A DNA stretch of 64,000 bases from Phaeosaccion multiseriatum (taxonomy: Eukaryota; Protista; Ochrophyta, other classes). This document shows positions 1,070 to 26,143 of the stretch, piece after piece. The stretch covers positions 3,224,001-3,288,000 of the forward strand of contig OZ218963.1 of NCBI GenBank assembly GCA_965112735.1. The letters are read 5' to 3'. Numbering within the stretch: the first letter of the stretch is position 1; each line of letters begins with the position of its first letter. The notes beneath the pieces were generated by a model. The model did no database searches and was not told the origin of the DNA. It was given only the letters and a program-made list of their open reading frames with translations. Both the position numbers and the translations under genes were made by a program.

Positions 1070-1558
1070 CATCAGGAGGGATCAGACCTCACGAGCGGCA
1101 CTACGAAGGTCTAGGCCACGAGCAGTAGCAGGAGCAGCAGCAGCAGCAGCACAGCAGCAGCGGCGGCTACGGCAGCAGTAGCAGCAGCAGCGTTGGCAGT
1201 GTTTCAGCAGTGGAGGCCTTGATATTGGAAATCACTAATTGCAGCATCTTGATTTATAGCTGAGCGACAGCAGAGGAGAAGTGACCCAACTTGGCCTGGA
1301 CAAAAACTAAATTTTTACACTCCAGAGAGAAGTAATCATAAGGCCTGGACATACAAAAAAATTCCACTTTGATTTATTAACACTCATTTTGCGTAAGAAT
1401 CGCCCACATGGCCCGTTCTTTTAGGGATCGGGCGGCAAGGGGGAGTGCTCTTGCAGAAATGCCGACAAGTAGGGAAGGGGAAAGGGATGAAAGCCGAAAG
1501 ACTATGGCTGGATAGTCTATGTGTAAAGTTCCAATCAATCAATTGATCCATCAGTCAA

Positions 1559-4500
1559 TCAGCCTTTCCATCGCACCAGTGTTAGACCGTCCCTCAAGGG
1601 AAGCACGACGATCTCTACCCGAGGATCGGCGTTGATGTGGTCATTGAAGTCCGCAAGGCTCTCGGCGATTCTTCTCCGCCTCTTCACTCGTTTGGCCAGG
1701 ATTTTGTCCTCCTTTCCTCCTCCCCCTCCGCCTGCTCCTGCCTCTGCTCCTACTGCTGCTGCCGATGCTACTGTTGTTGTTGTTGCTGCTGCCGATGCTA
1801 CTGTTGTTGCTGCTGATACTCCTTCAACTTCAAGCCCTCCTACCTCGCTCAGTGCTTCACCACTGCTGCTACTGCTGCTGCTGCTACTGCCAATCTGGCT
1901 TGCCTCCTCGCTCCTCTCGTGCTCCACTTCCAGAACTTCCCCATGAAACATGACATTGTCCACCAGCAAGAGGCCCTTCTTGCTCAACAAGCGATTGTCC
2001 ATTATCGTGTCGTAGTATGTCCGGTACATGCGCTTGTCTCCGTCGATAAAGACGATATCAAAGGGTTGCTCTCCTCCCTCGACCATACCCTGAAGCGTGT
2101 CCATCGCCGGTCCAAGCTCGACACGTATTCTGCCGCCGTACTCGCTCTCATCGAAGAAACGCTGCGCAAAAGCGGCACTTCGCGGATCAATCTCGCACGT
2201 AACGACTTGTTGGTCCCTCCTCTCGTGCTTCCTCTGACCCGACGTACCAGCGAGGCTGTCGAGGCCCTCAGTCGTCGAGGTCGTAGTCGAACTAAGGCCC
2301 TCCGCAAAGCACAGCGCACTGTAGCCTGTAAAACAGCCAATCTCCAAGACTCTTTGGGCACCGAGCAGTTTCGTCAAGAGCGTGAGAAGCCGCCCTTGGA
2401 GGTGACCCGCAAGCATATGGGCCGCCGATGAGTACTCCTCGGATGTCTCCTTCCTGTGTTCCCGTGTACATTCAGTCAGAGGTAAGTAAGTACGTAAGTA
2501 AGTAAAGTAAGTAAGGACACCCTGGGGGGGCGGGGGAGCGGAGGGCAAAGCACTCCGCCATGCTTAATACAAACGCACCGCAAACGGAAGAAGTTGGGTT
2601 TCACATGTACCCAACTAACTCATGGTAGTGCTCTTCACCTCCCCACCCTCCCAAGAAGCGTCCAATTGACACGTGACACTCTCAACCCCACTCTCTAACA
2701 TTCATGGAGTAGGCACAGAAGCTTCGATATCGACTCCGTTTATGGTGTTCGATATTGACAAGGTCACACAAATCTCGCGCACTCACCGCAGTCGTGCGAG
2801 GAGGGCTGGCTCCTCACTGGACTTGTCAGAGGCATACCGCTCCATGAGCTCATCCATCTTGCGATTGAGGCCTGCGTTCTGAAACCGCTGCGGTACCACC
2901 TCCCACTGCTCCTGCTGCTGTATCACTAACTGCTCCTGCTGCTGCTGCTGCTGCAGCTGCGCGTCCTCGCTACTGTGGGGAGGAGTATCCGTAGTGGCGG
3001 TGGCCGCAGTACCCGCAGAAATTGGCTGTACCACATTGGCGATGTTCGGCGTTAGGGTAGCGCGTGTTGTGGAAGGCGCGGTGAACACCCCCCCCGGGGA
3101 CAGTCCACCACCTGTTGCTGGTGCTGCTCCTGCTGCTGCCCCACTCGCTGCCGTGTCACCAGCTGCTACTGCTGCGCGCATGATTTGGCAGCCTTTGCTG
3201 CAACAGCCGTCGTACTTTTGACCACAGGCTGAGCATTGTATGAATCTGACGTGACAGCGTTCGTTACGACAATTTACCTGAGAGCGCATCACAATTAGAT
3301 GAAGAAAAAAGTCGTTCGTTACTCCACACACACGCCGATCGTTACTCCACACACACGCCGACCGCCGAAACCCACAACGCATGCACAAACACTGTCGTTT
3401 CCGCACTGCCAAAAGCCTTCTCTCTCCGCCCAACCATACACTACTCTCTCTGTACAGTACCAAATGTGTCAAGTCACTCTTTCTGCTTTTTGGGCTCTCC
3501 TTGATCTACTCACATGGTCGTCGTTGGGGGTCCCACATTGATCACAATTGGAGAGCACGTCTTGAGTAATTCTCTCTCCCATTCGATTGTCAAACACGTA
3601 GTTCTTTCCCTTGAACTTGCTGGTGGTGCCCCCCTCCTCTTGCAGCTTGCTGACATACCTGGCGAGTCAAGAGGACAGGAGGACACTCGTGTTTAGAAAG
3701 TCACCACCACCCACCACCTGCCGTCCGTATGGAACATGGGTGGGGGTACATGGAAGCCCTCGAGTAACTACGCACTAAGAAAGTAACTATACACAAACAA
3801 AGACCTCTATATATACCTCGTCTGGCGCGCGACTTGCGAGCGTCGGAACGCCGCTTGCCGACGTAACGAAACACTCCAATTGCTCCACACCACCCGCTAG
3901 TCGGACCTCCGTCATGACTCACCTGGCGTACTTTATGATGCCCCCATTGAGGCGCTTGACGTTGGTGAAGCCCATCTCCTGCTCCAGATAGGCGGCAATC
4001 TTGACGCACCGAATTCCCCCGGTGCAGTACGTGAGCACTGGGCGGTCCTTGGGTGTGTCTCGGAGGGATTGCCGTAAGGAGTCCCAAGACTCGCGGAAGA
4101 AGGAGGTGTCTAGTGGAACGGCTGTGCCGAGGGAGGGGGAGGAGCGGGCGGGGGTGGAAAAATCCATGTGGAGAGGGAAGGGAAGCAGGGGAGGAGGGGG
4201 GGGCGAGAGGGTGCGCATGGATGGGTGGCACGAAACGCCACACCAGAAGTTCGTCAGTCTTGAGACATTCGGTTGTTCGTCCAAGCAATTAGTCAGTCAG
4301 TCAGTCAATCAATCAAATCGGATGTGTGGGTGCGGACAGTCAATCAGTCAAGTCAGACCACCAGTGCTGCGTGACCCCGAATACATAACGTTACGTACCC
4401 GTGTCAAAAATGCCAACATCCGTTTCGTAAGTGTTTCTACAGTCTAGAACAACGGTGTCGTCCCTGTCCACCATCTCGTGCCAAGCGTCGGGCTCCATGC

Positions 4501-7161
4501 CCTCTCCAATGTTGGAGTCGAATTGCAGCGCCGTTGTGACTGGGTCCAACCCGTCCGAGACGATTTGGTGCCGCATCCGAACATGCAGGTTGGAAAAGGG
4601 CCTTGTGGTTGTGACCATCGGGGACATGCGTGTAGTGTATGTACGTAGGTAAGGAAAATGCAAGTCTTGGATTGGGTTCCGCCTTCATTTTGCAGACCCA
4701 CCACATGGGACGACACGTCAAGAGGACCCACCCACTGCCATCGCTCTATGGCACTCTATGGCACTTACCTCCTCGAGTTGAACTTGTCCCGACTCCAGAC
4801 CTCAGTGTCCTGCCCGCATGTGAGGGGGCGCAGAAAGGCACAATGACGAGGGGGGGTTCAGCGCGATACCCTATCCCCTTAAAACTTGTTTCAAATTCAG
4901 TGAGTGCACGCGTCCGCCCGCCCTTCCCACCGGAGAGAGAAAGACAGGGACAGAGAGAGAGAGACACACACACAAAGAGAGAGAGAGAAAGAGAGCCCTC
5001 TCGACCCCCCCCCCCACACACACGCAAGGTTCCTTTCCTTCTCACCTTGTTGATGTAAACGCCCTGCAGCTTCTCGACGGAGTCCACAGCCAGCTTAAAG
5101 TGATCCATCACTTGGAGAGGTACGCTCATTTGGGCATTGATGCCCTCGTGGGCTACATACACCCTCCCAAACACTCCCAGCGGCCTCCACAGCATCTGCA
5201 GCATCAGACTGAACGTCTCTGGATCATCGATCGGCACAAATCTGATGGGGAGGGGAGAGGGGAGGGTGGGGGGGCGGGCGAATGCCTGAGCACGGTGAGG
5301 TACAGCTGTGGCGAGAGAGAGTGGAGAGGGAGAGGAGAGAGGGAGGGAGAGAGGAGAGAGAGAGAGAGAGAGGAGAGAGGGAGAGAGAGAGAAGAGAGGG
5401 AGAGAGAGGAGAGAGGGAGAGAGAGAGGAGAGAGGGAGAGAGAGGAGAGAGGCAGAGAGAGAGGAGAGCGGGAGAGGAGAGAGGGAGAGGAGAGGGAGAG
5501 AGAGGAGAGAGGGAGGAGAGAGAGAGAGGAGAGAGGGAGAGAGGGAGGAGAGAGAGGAGAGAGAGGAGAGAGGGAGAGAGAGGAGAGAGGGAGAGAGGGA
5601 GGAGAGAGGGAGAGAGAGAAGAGAGGGAGAGGAGAGAGGAGAGAGGGAGAGGAGAGAGGGGGTAGGAGGGAGAGGGAGAGGAAGAGTAACGAGTCTCGGA
5701 CGGGCCAGAGAATCACTCACCTGTAGAAGGAAATCATCTGCCACTGATCCGGGTCCTCTACGTCGGGAAGATTCTGCAAATAAGGCGGAACTTCATCCTC
5801 CGGGATATCGGGGTGAATGTCGAGGAATATGTAAAGGTCCTTGCCCTCCGTCTCCTTCAATGAAGGCAAAAGGAGAGGGGCGGGGGAGGGCATATGGACA
5901 GTCAGGCCCAGGAAGGACAGCACGGGGGGAAGAATTGCAAGAGCCCAGAGACTATAAACTTTGTTCATCATATGTATCACTCACCGCCCAGTGAAGCGCC
6001 TCTCGCATTCCGGCATCGTCTGTGAGCCGAGCCTTGTCCCCTTCCCGATCTGTCTTTACACTGCACGAGAAGGATAAGAGATACGGAGCAGAGAAAGTAC
6101 TCAGCGCAGAGCAAGCAGAGAAAAATGCCCAGAGCTAACCTTCTCAGCCTTCTTTGTGGGCTAGCTTCTTTTCCAACAAGGAAGACTGCGACCCCATCCC
6201 CCTGACTCTCTGAAGTATTAGTGCCCTTACCTGAGAACAAACGGTAAACCTTTGAGCGGAAAGGCCTCAGTGATCGCCTCGCTGATGGTTTCCAGCAATC
6301 CTTCCTCCCGTTGTAGGTCCTCTTGTGAAACAAACACTCTGGACCTCTTCTCCCGACCCTTTAGTCGGAGGCGCGCTCGCAACTCCGGAGAAGCGATGAC
6401 CTGTATTTGGCCACATCGGCACCCAAAGAGTCAAAAGGCCGAGAGCGAGAGCAGTATGAGGAAACAGGGTGCAAGTCGCCAGGGAAATCGCAGGCATGAC
6501 GGCCCTTCCAAAGCCCTGACCTTGAGCGGCGTCAGGTCCTTCGACTCCATTTCTTGCTTGATACTGAGGTTTCTCTCCCGAAGGCGCTTGCCGTTCTCCT
6601 TCCTCCTTTCCCTCCCGCCTTCCTGCTGTTGCCTGAGCAATTCTTGCTGCGCTGTCTCCATCAAGGAGGGCAGACGGCGAGGTATACCAGCATTCTCCCT
6701 CCGTGCTACAGTCGTTGTCGCCTCCGTGAGAGCAGTGCCGGTGGCAGTAGGGCCACTGCCCCTGCTGATAGTATCATCACTATTTCTGCCGGCATCGTCG
6801 AGACTACTACTGCTGCTGCTGGTGGTGCTTCTCCTTCTACTTGAGTGGCTCCTTCCCCAATCCTGGGCATGGAGCAAAGAGGGCGGAGGCGAGAGGTTGG
6901 GAACGAGCGACGGCCTCAACCCCAAGCAACACTGGAGCCACCCAGCTCTTCACCGAGTCACGCACATGCACTCTCTCATCAGTAAGCCACGTTCTTCTTA
7001 ACCTTCCTCTCTCCTCCCTTCATCACCTTGGTGATCCTTGGTTGATGCTGCTGCAGCTTTGCCAGCTGAGGCGCGTTGAAGGCGTAGGCAGCAGCAGAGG
7101 CAGACAGCAGCAGCAGAATAGTTGCAGCTCTATTGGCTCTGATTCCACAGCAAGTAATCAT
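1559..7161 (-). CDS. Plastid-targeted fusion of a TrhO/YceA-type (UPF0176) rhodanese tRNA-U34 hydroxylase and a class I (CCoAOMT/TrmR-family) O-methyltransferase, multi-exon
   Basis: N-terminus MITCCGIRANRAATILLLLSASAAAYAF (signal peptide + AF). TrhO motifs: MISFYRFVPIDDP, GRVYVAHEGINAQ, VVLDCRNTYETDVGIF, YCTGGIRCVK, LNGGIIKY, FKGKNYVFDNRM and the Cys-rich CDQCG...VNCRNERCHVRFIQCSAC...CCSKGC. OMT motifs: QGRLLTLL, RVLEIGCFTGYSAL, FDIVFIDGDK, GLLLVDNVMFHG, VVLPLRDGLTLVR. Last intron 2786-2454 is GT-AG and in phase. Confidence 0.88.
5314..5685. repeat. About 370-bp almost pure purine (GA-rich) low-complexity tract in an intron of the TrhO-OMT gene
   Basis: Degenerate GGAGAGAG(G) units; pyrimidine-rich on the sense strand. 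Confidence 0.9.
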
Positions 7162-7743
7162 GTGGGGGAAAAAATTAGAGGAGAAGATGGGATTGAAGGG
7201 AGGGGGCAGTTGCAGTTTCAGACCATTAGATTTCCTTTCGTCCTGCTTTTTCGCTCTGTCTTTCCTCCTTTTAGTGTCCACACACACTGACAATGTTCAG
7301 AGCCGGTGTAGGCGTCAGCCGGGTGAGTGAAAACGGTCTTCTTTGCTCTTTTTGGGACATCTCATAGCCCCTTCTCGCTCTTCTGCTGACAGACTGCGAG
7401 CCTGCTGCGCTCACAGGCAGCTCGGACCACGATAACGCGCGGAACGCTATCGGCAGCGGAGGCGGCCGCGGCCTACGGAGAAGAGAGTACGTCAGAGTAC
7501 AAGGGGTGTGAAGGGAAAGAGAGACGACAGCAGCAAAGATGAGAGGGAGGGGAAGAGGCGACGGGCAAGGATAGGCGGCTCTGCGTGGGAAGGAGAGGAG
7601 GGGAATACGGTCACTATACCTCTATACGACCCACTCTGTCATTCAGCCGTTCCCCTCGCTTCCTTTCCCGCTTCATCCGTGTCTCGCGTCCTCTCCTCCT
7701 CCTTCTCACCTCCTCAGAACAAACCGTCGAAGAGGCTTGGAAA

Positions 7744-9365
7744 ATGAGTTGGTGAGTTTTTTGCTCTGAGTCTCTCATCTCATCATGTCTGCTCTCGGCT
7801 CCTCGTGCTTGCCCTCATCTCCTCATGCTTGCTCTCTCTCTCTCGTTTTTCCTCGACTCTTGTCTCTCAAACCCCCTCTGTGTTCCCCTCCCTCCCCCCT
7901 TCTCCCTCCTTATATCTCTGCCCCCCTCTCCCCTCTCTCTCCCACGAAGCTACTATAACATGGACTACACGATCAAACAAGACGCAACTGTATACGAGGC
8001 AATCCAGCGTCTCGCAGCGTACAACGTGGGCTGCCTCCTGGTGACCTCTCCAGACGACGATAAGAAGCTCACCGGAGTCTTCTCCGAACGAGACTACTGC
8101 TGCAAGGTAGGTATGGCTCAGTTGACTCATGCGTTTGGGGTTTTGGAGCAGCGTGCCACAGAGTCGGGGGAGCCGACGACTGGGGCTGCTGTACCACCAA
8201 CTGCTGCGCGCCCCCACCCTTTTCGTGCTCCTTAAATGCTTAAGCGTCACATCTCTCATCATTTTCCATCCAGCTTCTCTTGTCCCTTCCTTCCTTCCTC
8301 CTCCCATCCCACTCCTCCTGCCCTCCCCCTGTCCCTTCTTTCCATCTTCCTCTCTCCTTCCGCCTCACATCCCTCTGGGGGTGGTGTGTTTACTTTTATC
8401 TCCCACCTCTTCCTACCTACCTACCTATCTACTTTCCTACTAACCCACCTACCTCCCTTACTTGCCTCCTTACCCCCCCACACACTCAAATCTACCGCAA
8501 GGTGGCATTGCACGGCCGAAACTCGAAGGAAACCCTCGTGTCAGACTGTTGGACTCCGGTGTCAAAATTGGTCAGCGTAGACGAGAAAGACACTGTGGAC
8601 GTATGCGTTGAGAAGATGCTGTCTGCCGATATCCGCCACCTTCCAGTGCTGGACAGCACCTCTGGAAAGATCTACGGTTTGCTAAGGTACGTAGCATCAT
8701 TTCGTATATATATTATTATACTCATCTCTTTCCTTTGGTCTTACGTATTCCTCGTTGACCTCTGGGTTCGGCTCCAAATTTCGTCAACGTTATCCCCACC
8801 TCTGATGGCGCCAGCTTTGTCGGCTTTTTGCTCTCTCCCCTCCCCCCCCCAACCCCCCCCCCACGGGCTCCCGCCCCTGCCCGTTGGTGGGGAAATGGTC
8901 TTGTTTGCTGTTGTTTGATGCGGGCGGTGACTGCTGGACTTTTATCTGCCCTGCTTGACCGCACTAACAGCATAAAGGACTTGGTGAAGGTGAGGGAAGT
9001 AAATGAAGTGATGTGCCACGACCAACCAACACTGGCCAACACTGTGGGTTGCGGGGGTATAGCCTTTGGTAGCAGCTCTCGTATGAATCCATGTGCAGTA
9101 AGTTGTGAGTGGTCGGAGTTCCTTTTTTTTCTCTATCCTTTTGTCACTTGCTGGCGTACTCTCTTGAGCAACACCTCGGCTTTACTGTACCCTCACTGTC
9201 CCTTCACTGTCCTCACTGTCCCTTCACTGTACCCTCACTGTCCCCTCACTGCCCCCTCACCGTCCCCTCACTGCCCCCTCACTGTCCTCGTGTCCTGAAA
9301 CTGAAAAGGTCTATACCTCCGAGAAGGACGCGCTCATGGCCAAAGTCTTCGGAGCAGCGATTTGA
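7744..9365 (+). CDS. CBS-domain pair protein (CBSX3-like), multi-exon
   Basis: Exons YTIKQDATVYEAIQRLAAYNVGCLLV...GVFSERDYCCK / VALHGRNSKETLVSD...VEKMLSADIRHLPVLD...IYGLL / SIKDLVK / VYTSEKDALMAKVFGAAI*. The start (ATGAGTTG|gtgagt) is inferred. Confidence 0.85.
9183..9288 (+). repeat. 11-12 bp minisatellite (CTCACTGTCCC-like) in the last CBS intron
   Basis: About 9 degenerate copies visible. Confidence 0.85.
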
Positions 9366-23531: not shown

Positions 23532-26111
23532 ATGAAGATGAGTACTACCGCTCTGTGGGCGAGCTCTGGAAGCCTCAGGGCCCTGAACCAGCTGGAAGAG
23601 CAGGAAGAGGAGGAGAGGCAGCGACAAGAGGGCCCGCAGCAGCAGCAGCAGCAGCAGCAGTGGATGCAGGATGAAATGGCTGTTGGGGGGGTTGTAGGCG
23701 ATGGTGATGAAGTCACGGCGGAGGAGGACTTTGAGGATGTTATTTCGTCGGTCGTCTCAGGTCGACCCGTGACAGCTCCCACTCCCGAGCGCTTTTCCTC
23801 CCCCCCTTCCAGCAGCAAGCGGATGAAGAGAAGAGGGCCAGGAAGAGGAGTAGGGAGGGGCTCCTGGCAGAAGAGCGGCGCAGAGCGAGCACACGGGTCG
23901 GGACCGCTGGCGAAAGGAGAGGGAGGGCGGCTGGGAGTAGAGGGAGGGGGGGGGGGCAAAGGAGCGAACGAACGGGCTCGTGAGACTAGTACGCACTTTG
24001 TAGGGCCCCTCACGGCCAGGAAGTATGTATCCATCTCGCAGCGGCGCAGCCATGGGAACCACAGCCCCGTGCAAAGGTCGATTTTGCGGCGAGAAAGGCT
24101 AGAGAAGCAGCATCAGCATCAGCAGCAGCAGCTTGGCTGGGAGCAGTGCATGCAGAAATTCCGAGGGAATTATGGGGGTCTGCGGCTGAGACTCCGAGGC
24201 GAGGAAGGATTCCGGGCTAGCCTCCTTACGGGCAAGCCGTGTCCTCCACCGGCCCCGGGTGGGCTTGCCTTAGGAGGAACGGCAACAAAAATACATCGAG
24301 ATGAAGCAACCTGTCCATCAGGAGGGGGTGCGCACTCTAGCTCGGCTCGGGAGGGGGAGGACGAGGACGAGGAGGAGGAGGGATGTCGCCGACCAGCTGA
24401 TCTTGACTCATTCTCCGCTCTTTTCAAAAGAGACCAACCGGTATTGCCTGTTCCGGATGCGCACGCGAGCTGTTACAATTTGTGTGCGTCCTCCATCTTT
24501 GGTCGTCGGCGATACGATGCCACCTCCTCTTCGCCCCCCATCTCATCCTCTCCCTACGCTCATCTGCGTGGGGCCTTTGATGCTGACCTGCGGGGTGAGC
24601 GTAGGCCCTCCAAGTCAGCACCCGCGAGCTTGTTGCATGAGTCTTTCTCGCCTCCAGCAGGAACAGTTGGGGGAGGCTCGGGACCTGCAGCGACAGAAAG
24701 TACTTCAGAGACGGGGGCAGCAGAAAGGCAAGAGGGGGTCAACGACACAGGCATGGGGGAGAGTAGCAGCGGTAGCAGTGGCGGCCAGAAAGCTTTAGGG
24801 GACATGGAAGGGCGAGGCCGTGAAACGATGAAGTTGACAGTGTCTGCAGCGACCACTTCTTCACCGAAAATGCAAAAGTCCAGAGCTGGGGGTGCAGGAG
24901 GAGGTGTTCCAGTCAGTCGACTTCCCGCCGCGATGGGGAACTTCAGAACCAAAGGAGGAGGAGAGGGAGAACAGGGGGGAGGAGAGAGGGGAACAGGAAA
25001 GACGAAGGGAGGAGGCCTCCGCCTCTTTACCGAGACAGAGCTGAGCCACCTTATGCGCTTCATATCGGGGGACGTTTCAGCACCCGCAGGGAACTCCTCG
25101 TCTCTCACATCGAGCACAGGGGTAGAAGGTCCGCTCACGGCGCAGGCAACGGAAGCAGGGGTCCAGGGAGGAGCTCTGCAGCAGCAGCAGAAAGCTGTGG
25201 ATGCGATCATCACGTTAGAAAGTGTCTTGGTCGCTTTCCGCCGCCTCAACCGGGCGAGAGCAAACGAAACGCTCGAGGCCCGTGGACGCGTGGCGTGCTC
25301 CAAGGTAAGTGTGCGCAGGACGCCAAACCGATAAAAGCCCCTTCGTATACATAGCATACTCTTGTCGACTCCATTGAATCGTATGACTACAAGGAGAAAA
25401 GAGCCGCACTGGATGCCGAACAACGCCTCAGACACTGTGCTTTCGCCTCCCCCCCACGCCCTTCCCTTCTTCCCTTCTTTGGCCCTCTCCCTCCTCTTTC
25501 AGTTGCTTCGCCTCATCGAGCGTTGTGGGCTCTCCTTCGACAGCTGGTTCGAGCTCGTGGACATGAGTGGAGACAACCTCCTCACTCCGTTGGAAATCAA
25601 GGCAGGGCTCGGTCGTATGGCGGAGCTTATCGAAAAGAGGGAGCGGTTCTGCCTCGAGGAAACGTGTCACCGCAAGCCCAACTACGGCAACGCGGAGGAC
25701 GGATTGCCCACGCACTGCAGCGAGCACTTCCAGGAGGGCATGATCCATGTGGGGTATTCGCACAAGAACGACAAGTACGAGAGTCCCTCCTTCAGCAACT
25801 CGGATCTGCAGGACCTGTTGAGGTACTGCGACGGTGACGCCAACCAAAACCTCTCCACCAGTGAGTTCAAGAACGCACTGCATCAGCTTTCCGTGGACAC
25901 CAATGCCAGGCGGGTTACTCAAGAAGGGGGCAAGGTGAGAAGGATTGGGTGGTCAGGGTAGATTCGGCGGAGTGAGGAGATGTGTGTGTCCTATACACCC
26001 TCTAGTACCATCTGCGTAGGGAGGACATGCGAGTTTTGTAGCGAGACGGCAATGCATATACGACGATTCTCGGGCGTCCCTGCTGCTTCCGTCGCTACTC
26101 TGCGCGAATGG

Positions 26112-26143
<32 letters not shown>

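Follow-up and report, generated by a model that had tools for sequence, protein, structure and literature searches.

A TrhO–O-methyltransferase fusion gene in the ochrophyte alga Phaeosaccion multiseriatum and its predicted role in the modification of organellar tRNA wobble uridine

The window studied here is a stretch of 64,000 nucleotides from Phaeosaccion multiseriatum (GenBank assembly GCA_965112735.1, contig OZ218963.1, positions 3,224,001 to 3,288,000). At positions 1559–7161 of its minus strand it carries a gene whose predicted protein joins the three domains of TrhO (YceA of Escherichia coli) to an O-methyltransferase (OMT) of the Methyltransf_3 family. The reading that we consider rather probable is that this nuclear ochrophyte gene encodes one protein of 1008 residues, imported to the complex plastid, that does two consecutive steps on wobble uridine 34 (U34) of organellar tRNAs. 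After import of the nuclear-encoded protein, the TrhO half, with O2 and the rhodanese CTGGIR loop, would hydroxylate U34 to 5-hydroxyuridine (ho5U), and the C-terminal cation-dependent class I OMT would then use S-adenosylmethionine (SAM) to methylate the 5-hydroxyl, giving 5-methoxyuridine (mo5U34). The likely targets are the U34 tRNAs that singly decode four-codon boxes. The most economical way to read the locus is that hydroxylation of U34 is coupled to methylation of ho5U. This reading is supported by the gene structure, the domain order, the essential TrhO residues, the OMT's intact SAM and metal residues, the basic patch that its clade carries where the Bacillus subtilis methyltransferase TrmR (YrrM) holds the tRNA backbone, and the wide retention of the fusion, including in transcripts of relatives. 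Catalysis by either half, action on tRNA, the mo5U product and residence in the plastid are inferred.

The gene model was built by hand, with exons joined by eye at GT..AG boundaries on the minus strand of positions 1400–7400. The spliced exons comprise 3027 nt and 1008 codons with zero internal stops, and every donor and acceptor is canonical. The features of the gene are listed below in window coordinates, all on the minus strand, with residue numbers (aa) of the predicted protein.

1559..7161, minus strand: whole coding region, 12 exons and 11 GT-AG introns, 1008 aa plus stop.
7161-7027, 6862-6521, 6400-6231, 6060-5985, 5854-5721, 5241-5046, minus strand: exons 1–6, separated by GT..AG introns.
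4809-4769, 4601-4399, 4121-3923, 3658-3514, 3277-2787, 2453-1559, minus strand: exons 7–12, separated by GT..AG introns.
7081..7161, minus strand: signal-peptide-like N-terminus, aa 1–27, with the predicted cleavage context AYA|FNAP (F28 at 7078-7080); from the hydrophobic core and the motif.
6566..7080, minus strand: Ser/Thr/Arg-rich stretch resembling a transit peptide, aa 28–144, exons 1–2; from composition, with no Pfam match and a presumed function.
5744..6565, minus strand: conserved module upstream of TrhO, aa ~145–278, exons 2–5; from alignment A2, with a predicted beta-grasp fold.
4601..5743, minus strand: UPF0176_N (acylphosphatase-like) domain of TrhO, aa ~279–365; Pfam, 5e-15.
4571-4579, minus strand: basic strand residues R373 and R375, just downstream of UPF0176_N; aligned with K112 and R114 of E. 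coli.
3925..4513, minus strand: rhodanese domain of TrhO, aa ~395–498; Pfam Rhodanese, and the NCBIfam TrhO equivalog in pieces.
4006-4026, minus strand: active-site loop CTGGIRC (C465–C471); alignment to E. coli TrhO.
3185..3615, minus strand: Cys-rich C-terminal module of TrhO (Rhodanese_C), aa 514–578, split by intron 10; Pfam and Cys/His alignment.
2787..3277, minus strand: junction exon 11, containing the end of Rhodanese_C, an Ala/Thr/Gln low-complexity linker (aa 579–686), the motif PQ.FQ..LNR.D and the first OMT helix; Pfam, OMT profile and alignment.
1571..2860, minus strand: Methyltransf_3 OMT domain, aa 687–1005; Pfam, 7.8e-41, and residue mapping.
1694..1936, minus strand: low-complexity Ser/Ala/Thr/Gly insertion within the OMT, aa 884–964; alignment A1.
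1670..1693, minus strand: basic patch KRVKRRRR, aa 965–972, just before the last helix; phmmer map to TrmR.

The order of domains is signal peptide, Ser/Thr/Arg-rich stretch, beta-grasp-like module, complete TrhO, low-complexity linker and OMT. Pfam was run on single exons, and found UPF0176_N in exon 6, Rhodanese in exon 9 (1e-7) and Methyltransf_3 in exon 12. The Rhodanese_C profile is divided exactly by intron 10, with profile positions 1–35 in exon 10 and 36–66 in exon 11. The small exon 7, which encodes a variable loop, has the same length as in Chattonella and is flanked by the motif PF..LH.R.R, which supports the splice choices. Protein database searches returned no entry for the window protein itself.

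The fusion gene is confirmed as real. The 163 codons of exon 11 form one open frame, in which the final 31 residues of Rhodanese_C come first and KMDELMERYASDKSSEEPALLARL last; the match to an OMT profile made from 58 short family members begins within this exon, at residue 687 of the model. The PQ.FQ..LNR.D motif ahead of the OMT is conserved in Phaeothamnion, Chattonella and Vitrella. With its GT-AG borders, intron 11 (2786-2454) interrupts an Arg codon (cg|g), so that the join is in phase. The initial annotation had stated that the Cys-rich module of TrhO and the first OMT helix share the uninterrupted exon 3277-2787, that the next intron is GT-AG and in phase, and that the fusion hence needs no guessed join of genes; its description of the observation proved right in every detail that was checked. 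The possibility that two adjacent genes were read as one is very remote. It could appeal to the absence of transcript data for P. multiseriatum and to the TGA that overlaps the donor site of intron 11, at which translation would end immediately if the intron were retained; set against it are the single exon in which TrhO ends and the OMT starts, transcriptome open reading frames (ORFs) of Chattonella and Rhodosorus that span both domains, and dozens of independent fusion proteins.

These relatives were gathered by searching the full database with the OMT exon and then scanning the 268 OMT hits retrieved at that stage with the TrhO part of the window protein. The domain architecture was recovered in stramenopiles and beyond: TrhO is also present in 27 of the 268 hits, six of which have only its Cys-rich tail. 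A second search with the Phaeothamnion protein as the query listed dozens more fusions. The fusion is present in 25 or more protein clusters, which belong to ochrophytes, a chromerid, red algae, oomycetes and Plasmodiophora. Ochrophyte members include Phaeothamnion confervicola, Chattonella subsalsa, Cylindrotheca closterium, Ochromonadaceae CCMP2298 and Ochromonas; the others include Vitrella brassicaformis, Cyanidiococcus, Rhodosorus, Phytophthora, Aphanomyces and Plasmodiophora brassicae. The Chattonella and Rhodosorus fusions are single ORFs marked as complete in the Marine Microbial Eukaryote Transcriptome Sequencing Project (MMETSP), and therefore one mRNA encodes both halves in these relatives.

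The initial annotation had put forward the link between the two enzymes as a Rosetta-stone observation. The link is not novel: this kind of fusion appeared in print in 2019 as the clue that led to the function of TrhO. Sakai et al. (2019, Nat Commun, PMC6599085) reported yceA and trmR fused in Phytophthora sojae, P. ramorum and Phaeodactylum tricornutum, and chose yceA/TrhO as a candidate from this fusion and from the proximity of the gene to cmoA in cyanobacteria. In that study the fusion served as a comparative-genomics clue only; the species were called bacterial and the fusion proteins were not studied. The window locus adds one member to a published, widespread fusion type and is not a discovery of the link. 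It shares with the published Phytophthora and Phaeodactylum fusions the order of TrhO followed by Methyltransf_3, and its OMT belongs to the same eukaryotic clade as the sampled Phytophthora and diatom members. It differs in its greater length (1008 aa), the signal peptide with the AF motif, the beta-grasp-like module and two low-complexity insertions.

For the TrhO half, E. coli trhO (K-12 record), the window protein and six relatives that carry the fusion were aligned. The window TrhO region aligns continuously and is 38% identical to the E. coli protein over 319 columns; its identity to the proteins of Chrysoparadoxa, Ectocarpus, Scytosiphon, Phaeothamnion and Tribonema is 50–60%, which puts the alga among the ochrophytes, close to the brown/yellow-green algal group. 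The UPF0176_N, Rhodanese and Rhodanese_C architecture of TrhO is complete in exons 6, 9, 10 and 11. Mutations showed that C200, T201, G203, R205, K112 and R114 are essential in E. coli TrhO (PMC6599085). The first four, of the CXGGXR loop, correspond to C465, T466, G468 and R470 in the window, and K112 and R114 of the basic sheet correspond to R373 and R375; by alignment, the TrhO half retains every position proven essential in E. coli. The loop CTGGIRC is identical in the two proteins, and most Cys/His positions of the C-terminal module are conserved, with Asn in the window at E. coli C274. The NCBIfam TrhO equivalog NF001133 matches exons 6, 8, 9 and 10 in consecutive profile segments, and scoring exon by exon gives 36.6 + 51.1 + 62.2 + 17.7 = ~168 bits (cut-off 170); the Chattonella orthologue scores 203 and that of Phaeothamnion 165. 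What distinguishes the window protein from E. coli TrhO is the addition of the N-terminal targeting and beta-grasp extensions and of the C-terminal OMT.

The OMT half has intact SAM and metal residues: E798 at the SAM site and D848, K851, D876 and N877 at the metal and catalytic positions, the latter four being kept in 42/42 fusion OMTs. In TrmR the SAM site is formed by Glu-85, Arg-86, Arg-90 and Asp-133, and the tRNA backbone is contacted by Arg-181, Arg-178, Arg-86, Arg-90 and Lys-136 (Ryu et al. 2018, PMC6158493). We mapped these residues onto the window by the coordinates of short near-ungapped phmmer stretches, taking the numbering of the chain to equal that of the paper. Residues 176–214 of 5zw3 match the last 39 residues of the window protein (piece 7–45) ungapped, placing Arg-178 and Arg-181 at R969 and R972. 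For the region of Arg-86 and Arg-90 the window piece gave no TrmR match at E <= 10; there, 5zw3 residues 54–90 match a Vitrella piece, with Glu-85 at the conserved Glu, so that Arg-86 falls at +1 and Arg-90 at +5 from it. TrmR Glu-85 and the metal site Asp-133/Asp-159/Asn-160 correspond to E798, D848, D876 and N877 of the window, and Lys-136 to K851 in the DGDK motif.

R969 and R972 belong to the basic patch, whose residues close a clade-specific insertion. The insertion site (aa 884–964) is common to the eukaryotic fusion OMTs, and in the alignment both the insertion and the basic residues are lacking in the bacterial relatives. Lys/Arg counts were taken across 287 OMT domains. At the Arg-181 equivalent a basic residue is found in 32/40 fusion OMTs vs 23/195 domains outside the clade, and at the Arg-178 equivalent in 22/40 vs 17/195. 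Counted from the SAM Glu (E), the corresponding figures are 21/42 vs 23/198 at E+4 and 0/42 vs 2/198 at E+5, while E+1 is basic in 9/42 fusion OMTs.

The phylogenetic position of the OMT was determined by maximum likelihood from 64 OMT domains, 30 of them bacterial; B. subtilis TrmR, SynOMT and COMTD1 were left out. The branch separating all 30 bacterial OMTs, MysB included, from all eukaryotic ones has support 98/92, and the window OMT stands beside that of Phaeothamnion (84/72). The closest bacterial proteins include Nostoc OMTs of ~278 residues, those in MysB context being 41–44% identical to the window over the conserved core. One such Nostoc gene lies between a dehydroquinate synthase-like (DHQS-like) gene and ATP-grasp genes, i.e. 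in a mycosporine cluster. Relatives in DHQS-like/OMT/ATP-grasp clusters were noted at the cyanobacterial and actinobacterial loci L001 and L002 (Nostoc), L022, L026, L041, L054, L060 and L083. In the tree the six OMTs from a MysB context group together with support 100/99, and their clade lies on the bacterial side of the 98/92 branch. From its position in the tree, the window OMT is neither MysB nor a recent bacterial import; the MysB identity was ruled out by the tree together with the clade-specific insertion. SpoU genes were found 3–8 kb from the OMT gene in three of the 80 best bacterial loci and look incidental. A protein language-model atlas gave generic Methyltransf_3 clusters only.

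Three proteins of 723–769 aa from metagenome and Logan contigs (P0121, P0124 and P0280) join an RlmB/TrmH-like SpoU RNA 2'-O-methylase to Methyltransf_3. Their OMTs are among the very best matches to the window OMT, and in P0121 and P0124 the SpoU domain stands where TrhO would. This fusion, which occurs in other eukaryotes, is a second, independent tie of the OMT clade to RNA modification, and SpoU is apparently an undescribed second fusion partner of the clade. By its sequence features, the window OMT is best placed in a distinct eukaryotic subfamily that has a basic insertion and is also fused to SpoU RNA methylases. Tandem double-Methyltransf_3 proteins (P0122, P0125, P0129, P0133 and similar, e.g. 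Coemansia) fall within the same mainly eukaryotic OMT clade.

The N-terminus of the protein fits the bipartite signal of the ASAFAP type (signal peptide, Phe at +1 and transit-like stretch), as judged by motif alone. The hydrophobic core has a Kyte-Doolittle value of 2.05 over 12 residues and is followed by AYA|FNAP. An [A/C]|F motif after a hydrophobic N-terminus is also found in four relatives: Ochromonadaceae CCMP2298 (TRC|FKAP), Scytosiphon (AAA|FVL), P0293 and P0298. The signal-peptide-like N-terminus and AF motif reported in the initial annotation were found again, and the motif is shared by several ochrophyte relatives. The plastid setting that it proposed stood in part: the ochrophytes have the bipartite-like signal, but the fusion is not plastid-specific, being carried by plastid-free oomycetes and Plasmodiophora. 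The Aphanomyces and Plasmodiophora fusions have Arg-rich, mitochondrial-looking N-termini, and the fusion would therefore be an organellar enzyme in general, directed to the plastid in ochrophytes. Between the putative targeting region and TrhO lies the module of aa ~145–278, which is conserved in 21 relatives and has no Pfam match; it is common to ochrophyte and red-algal fusions, and E. coli TrhO lacks it. The AlphaFold model of the Tribonema copy is a beta-grasp with a predicted local distance difference test (pLDDT) score of 84. Its best Protein Data Bank matches are PB1 and ubiquitin-like (UBL) domains, and these are weak (E about 0.01–0.03, template modelling score by target up to 0.77).

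An enzyme that works as proposed but outside the plastid, either in the mitochondrion, with dual targeting, or in the cytosol through a shorter isoform starting at M113, is in our view unlikely. Such a location would agree with the N-termini of the plastid-free fusions, and the join of exons 1 and 2, on which the signal peptide depends, lacks RNA support and rests on the splice signals, the open frame upstream of M113 and the similar N-termini of relatives. It is opposed by the fact that exon 2 is open across 66 codons upstream of M113, and by the hydrophobic N-terminus followed by AYA|F, a layout repeated as [A/C]|F in the four ochrophyte relatives.

Several observations weigh against the two-step plastid reading as a whole. 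The TrmR-specific Arg-86 and Arg-90 are replaced by I799 and S803 in the window, with Arg only at 802 (+4). Among solved structures, the window OMT scores best with SynOMT (3cbg, 105.7 bits), followed by 3tr6 and 3r3h; TrmR (5zw3) scores 42.5 bits and comes ~40th, and 8k1f scores 36.1. Even P0124, a compact clade member without the long insertion, ranks TrmR only 25th. On these scores the OMT is not closer to TrmR than to other Methyltransf_3 subfamilies. At the 80 best bacterial OMT loci trhO was found within 8 kb in none, and six of the loci are mycosporine clusters. In Scytosiphon (P0295), Tribonema (P0288) and Chrysoparadoxa (P0316) the protein keeps TrhO followed by a degenerate OMT-like tail (the C-terminal ~300 residues); therefore the methylation step would be dispensable in close relatives, namely brown algae, Tribonema and Chrysoparadoxa. 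In these tails the SAM-loop, DADK and DN motifs are replaced (e.g. by LAVGLGSGG and ILLGGG), so that the OMT half seems to have decayed to a pseudo-enzyme in the three lineages; the window OMT is intact. Derivatives of the xo5U (5-oxyuridine) type were not detected in chloroplast tRNA of Chlamydomonas (PMC8877259). Our literature search found no experimental study of any eukaryotic TrhO homologue, in agreement with the statement of the initial annotation that no eukaryotic member has been characterised. Finally, four sequencing runs from one study contain 78–86% of the sampled words of the locus with the introns included, and so look DNA-like.

The link to TrmR proposed initially holds for the SAM and metal residues and for the equivalents of Arg-178 and Arg-181, but two of the three TrmR-specific arginines are missing, and OMTs of the SynOMT and SafC types score far higher. 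The two proteins have in common the Methyltransf_3 fold, the SAM Glu, the Asp/Asp/Asn triad and the equivalents of Lys-136, Arg-178 and Arg-181. They differ in the 80-residue insertion before the basic patch and in the Ile/Ser pair for Arg-86/Arg-90; moreover, TrmR (5zw3/5zw4) is a standalone protein encoded beside trhP1/trhP2 in Bacillus, whereas the window OMT is fused to TrhO. Because two defining features of TrmR fail, we do not classify the OMT as a TrmR orthologue. Its sequence marks it as a eukaryotic relative of TrmR-like enzymes and not a close orthologue of the Bacillus protein, and the domain plausibly works like TrmR.

A different explanation is that the OMT half is a cation-dependent enzyme acting on a small molecule (a catechol, phenylpropanoid or mycosporine-type compound) and was joined to TrhO with no shared substrate. 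The best solved-structure matches, which are SynOMT (Slr0095), SafC-type and other small-molecule OMTs, agree with it, as do the mycosporine-cluster setting of the closest cyanobacterial relatives and the intact metal triad. We nevertheless find it improbable. The fusion is kept in red algae, ochrophytes, chromerids, oomycetes and Plasmodiophora, and with such wide conservation an accidental join is unlikely. The eukaryotic clade lies outside both the MysB clade and all sampled bacterial OMTs, and a second, independent fusion ties it to an RNA methylase. For all their similarity in sequence score (SynOMT) and core identity (MysB-context Nostoc proteins), the SynOMT and MysB enzymes lack the insertion and the basic patch, and the MysB OMTs have no trhO within 8 kb.

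The TrhO half might hydroxylate RNA while the OMT half acts on another RNA target than tRNA U34, such as a hydroxylated pyrimidine in organellar rRNA; the fusion would then mark an RNA-modification module and not an mo5U34 pathway. Here the SpoU fusions count in favour, RlmB/TrmH-like 2'-O-methylases being families that act on rRNA and tRNA, and so does the loss of the Arg-86/Arg-90 equivalents. We regard this, too, as having a low probability. The known formation of 5-hydroxycytidine (ho5C) in rRNA uses a different enzyme family. In addition, the OMT keeps the equivalents of Arg-178 and Arg-181, which in TrmR hold the backbone of the anticodon stem-loop, and tRNA U34 is the only known substrate of TrhO (PMC6599085).

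A more far-reaching version of the two-step reading, which we hold only tentatively and consider less probable than the reading itself, is that the OMT represents a separate eukaryote-wide RNA-directed Methyltransf_3 family, with the basic insertion and with TrhO or SpoU as fusion partner, that gained ho5U methylation independently of the Firmicute TrmR, and that its product is the U* of plastid four-codon-box tRNAs. In such tRNAs U34 is described as unmodified or as the unidentified U* (review, PMC8877259). If true, this would be the first demonstration of a wobble pathway of the xo5U type in an organelle of a eukaryote. Wobble modifications of this type are considered a bacterial trait, and for no eukaryotic homologue of TrhO, animal TSTD2 included, is a function known; a 2023 review states that nothing is known about human TSTD2, and our literature search for a TSTD2/COMTD1 pairing in animals found no paper naming both. 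A conserved organelle-targeted TrhO-OMT offers a handle on the presence of ho5U or mo5U in plastid and mitochondrial tRNAs, and on the identity of the U34 modification in plastid four-codon-box tRNAs. The new contribution is a clearer picture of the OMT subfamily, with its basic patch, second fusion partner and decay in brown algae, that can guide the choice of residues and species to test.

Several minor observations were made at the locus. Runs of the tetranucleotide (TGAY)n occur on the minus strand at window positions 1547-1561, 4289-4350 and 26111-26141, with 11 matches vs 0.05 expected by chance. One of the runs begins at the stop codon of the fusion gene and gives stops in three frames directly after the coding region; another sits in intron 8. 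Intron 5 is mostly filled by a long CT-rich microsatellite-like repeat (window 5323-5661). A divergent neighbouring gene on the plus strand at 7825-8918, ~660 bp upstream of the start codon of the fusion gene, has at least two exons and encodes CBS domains.

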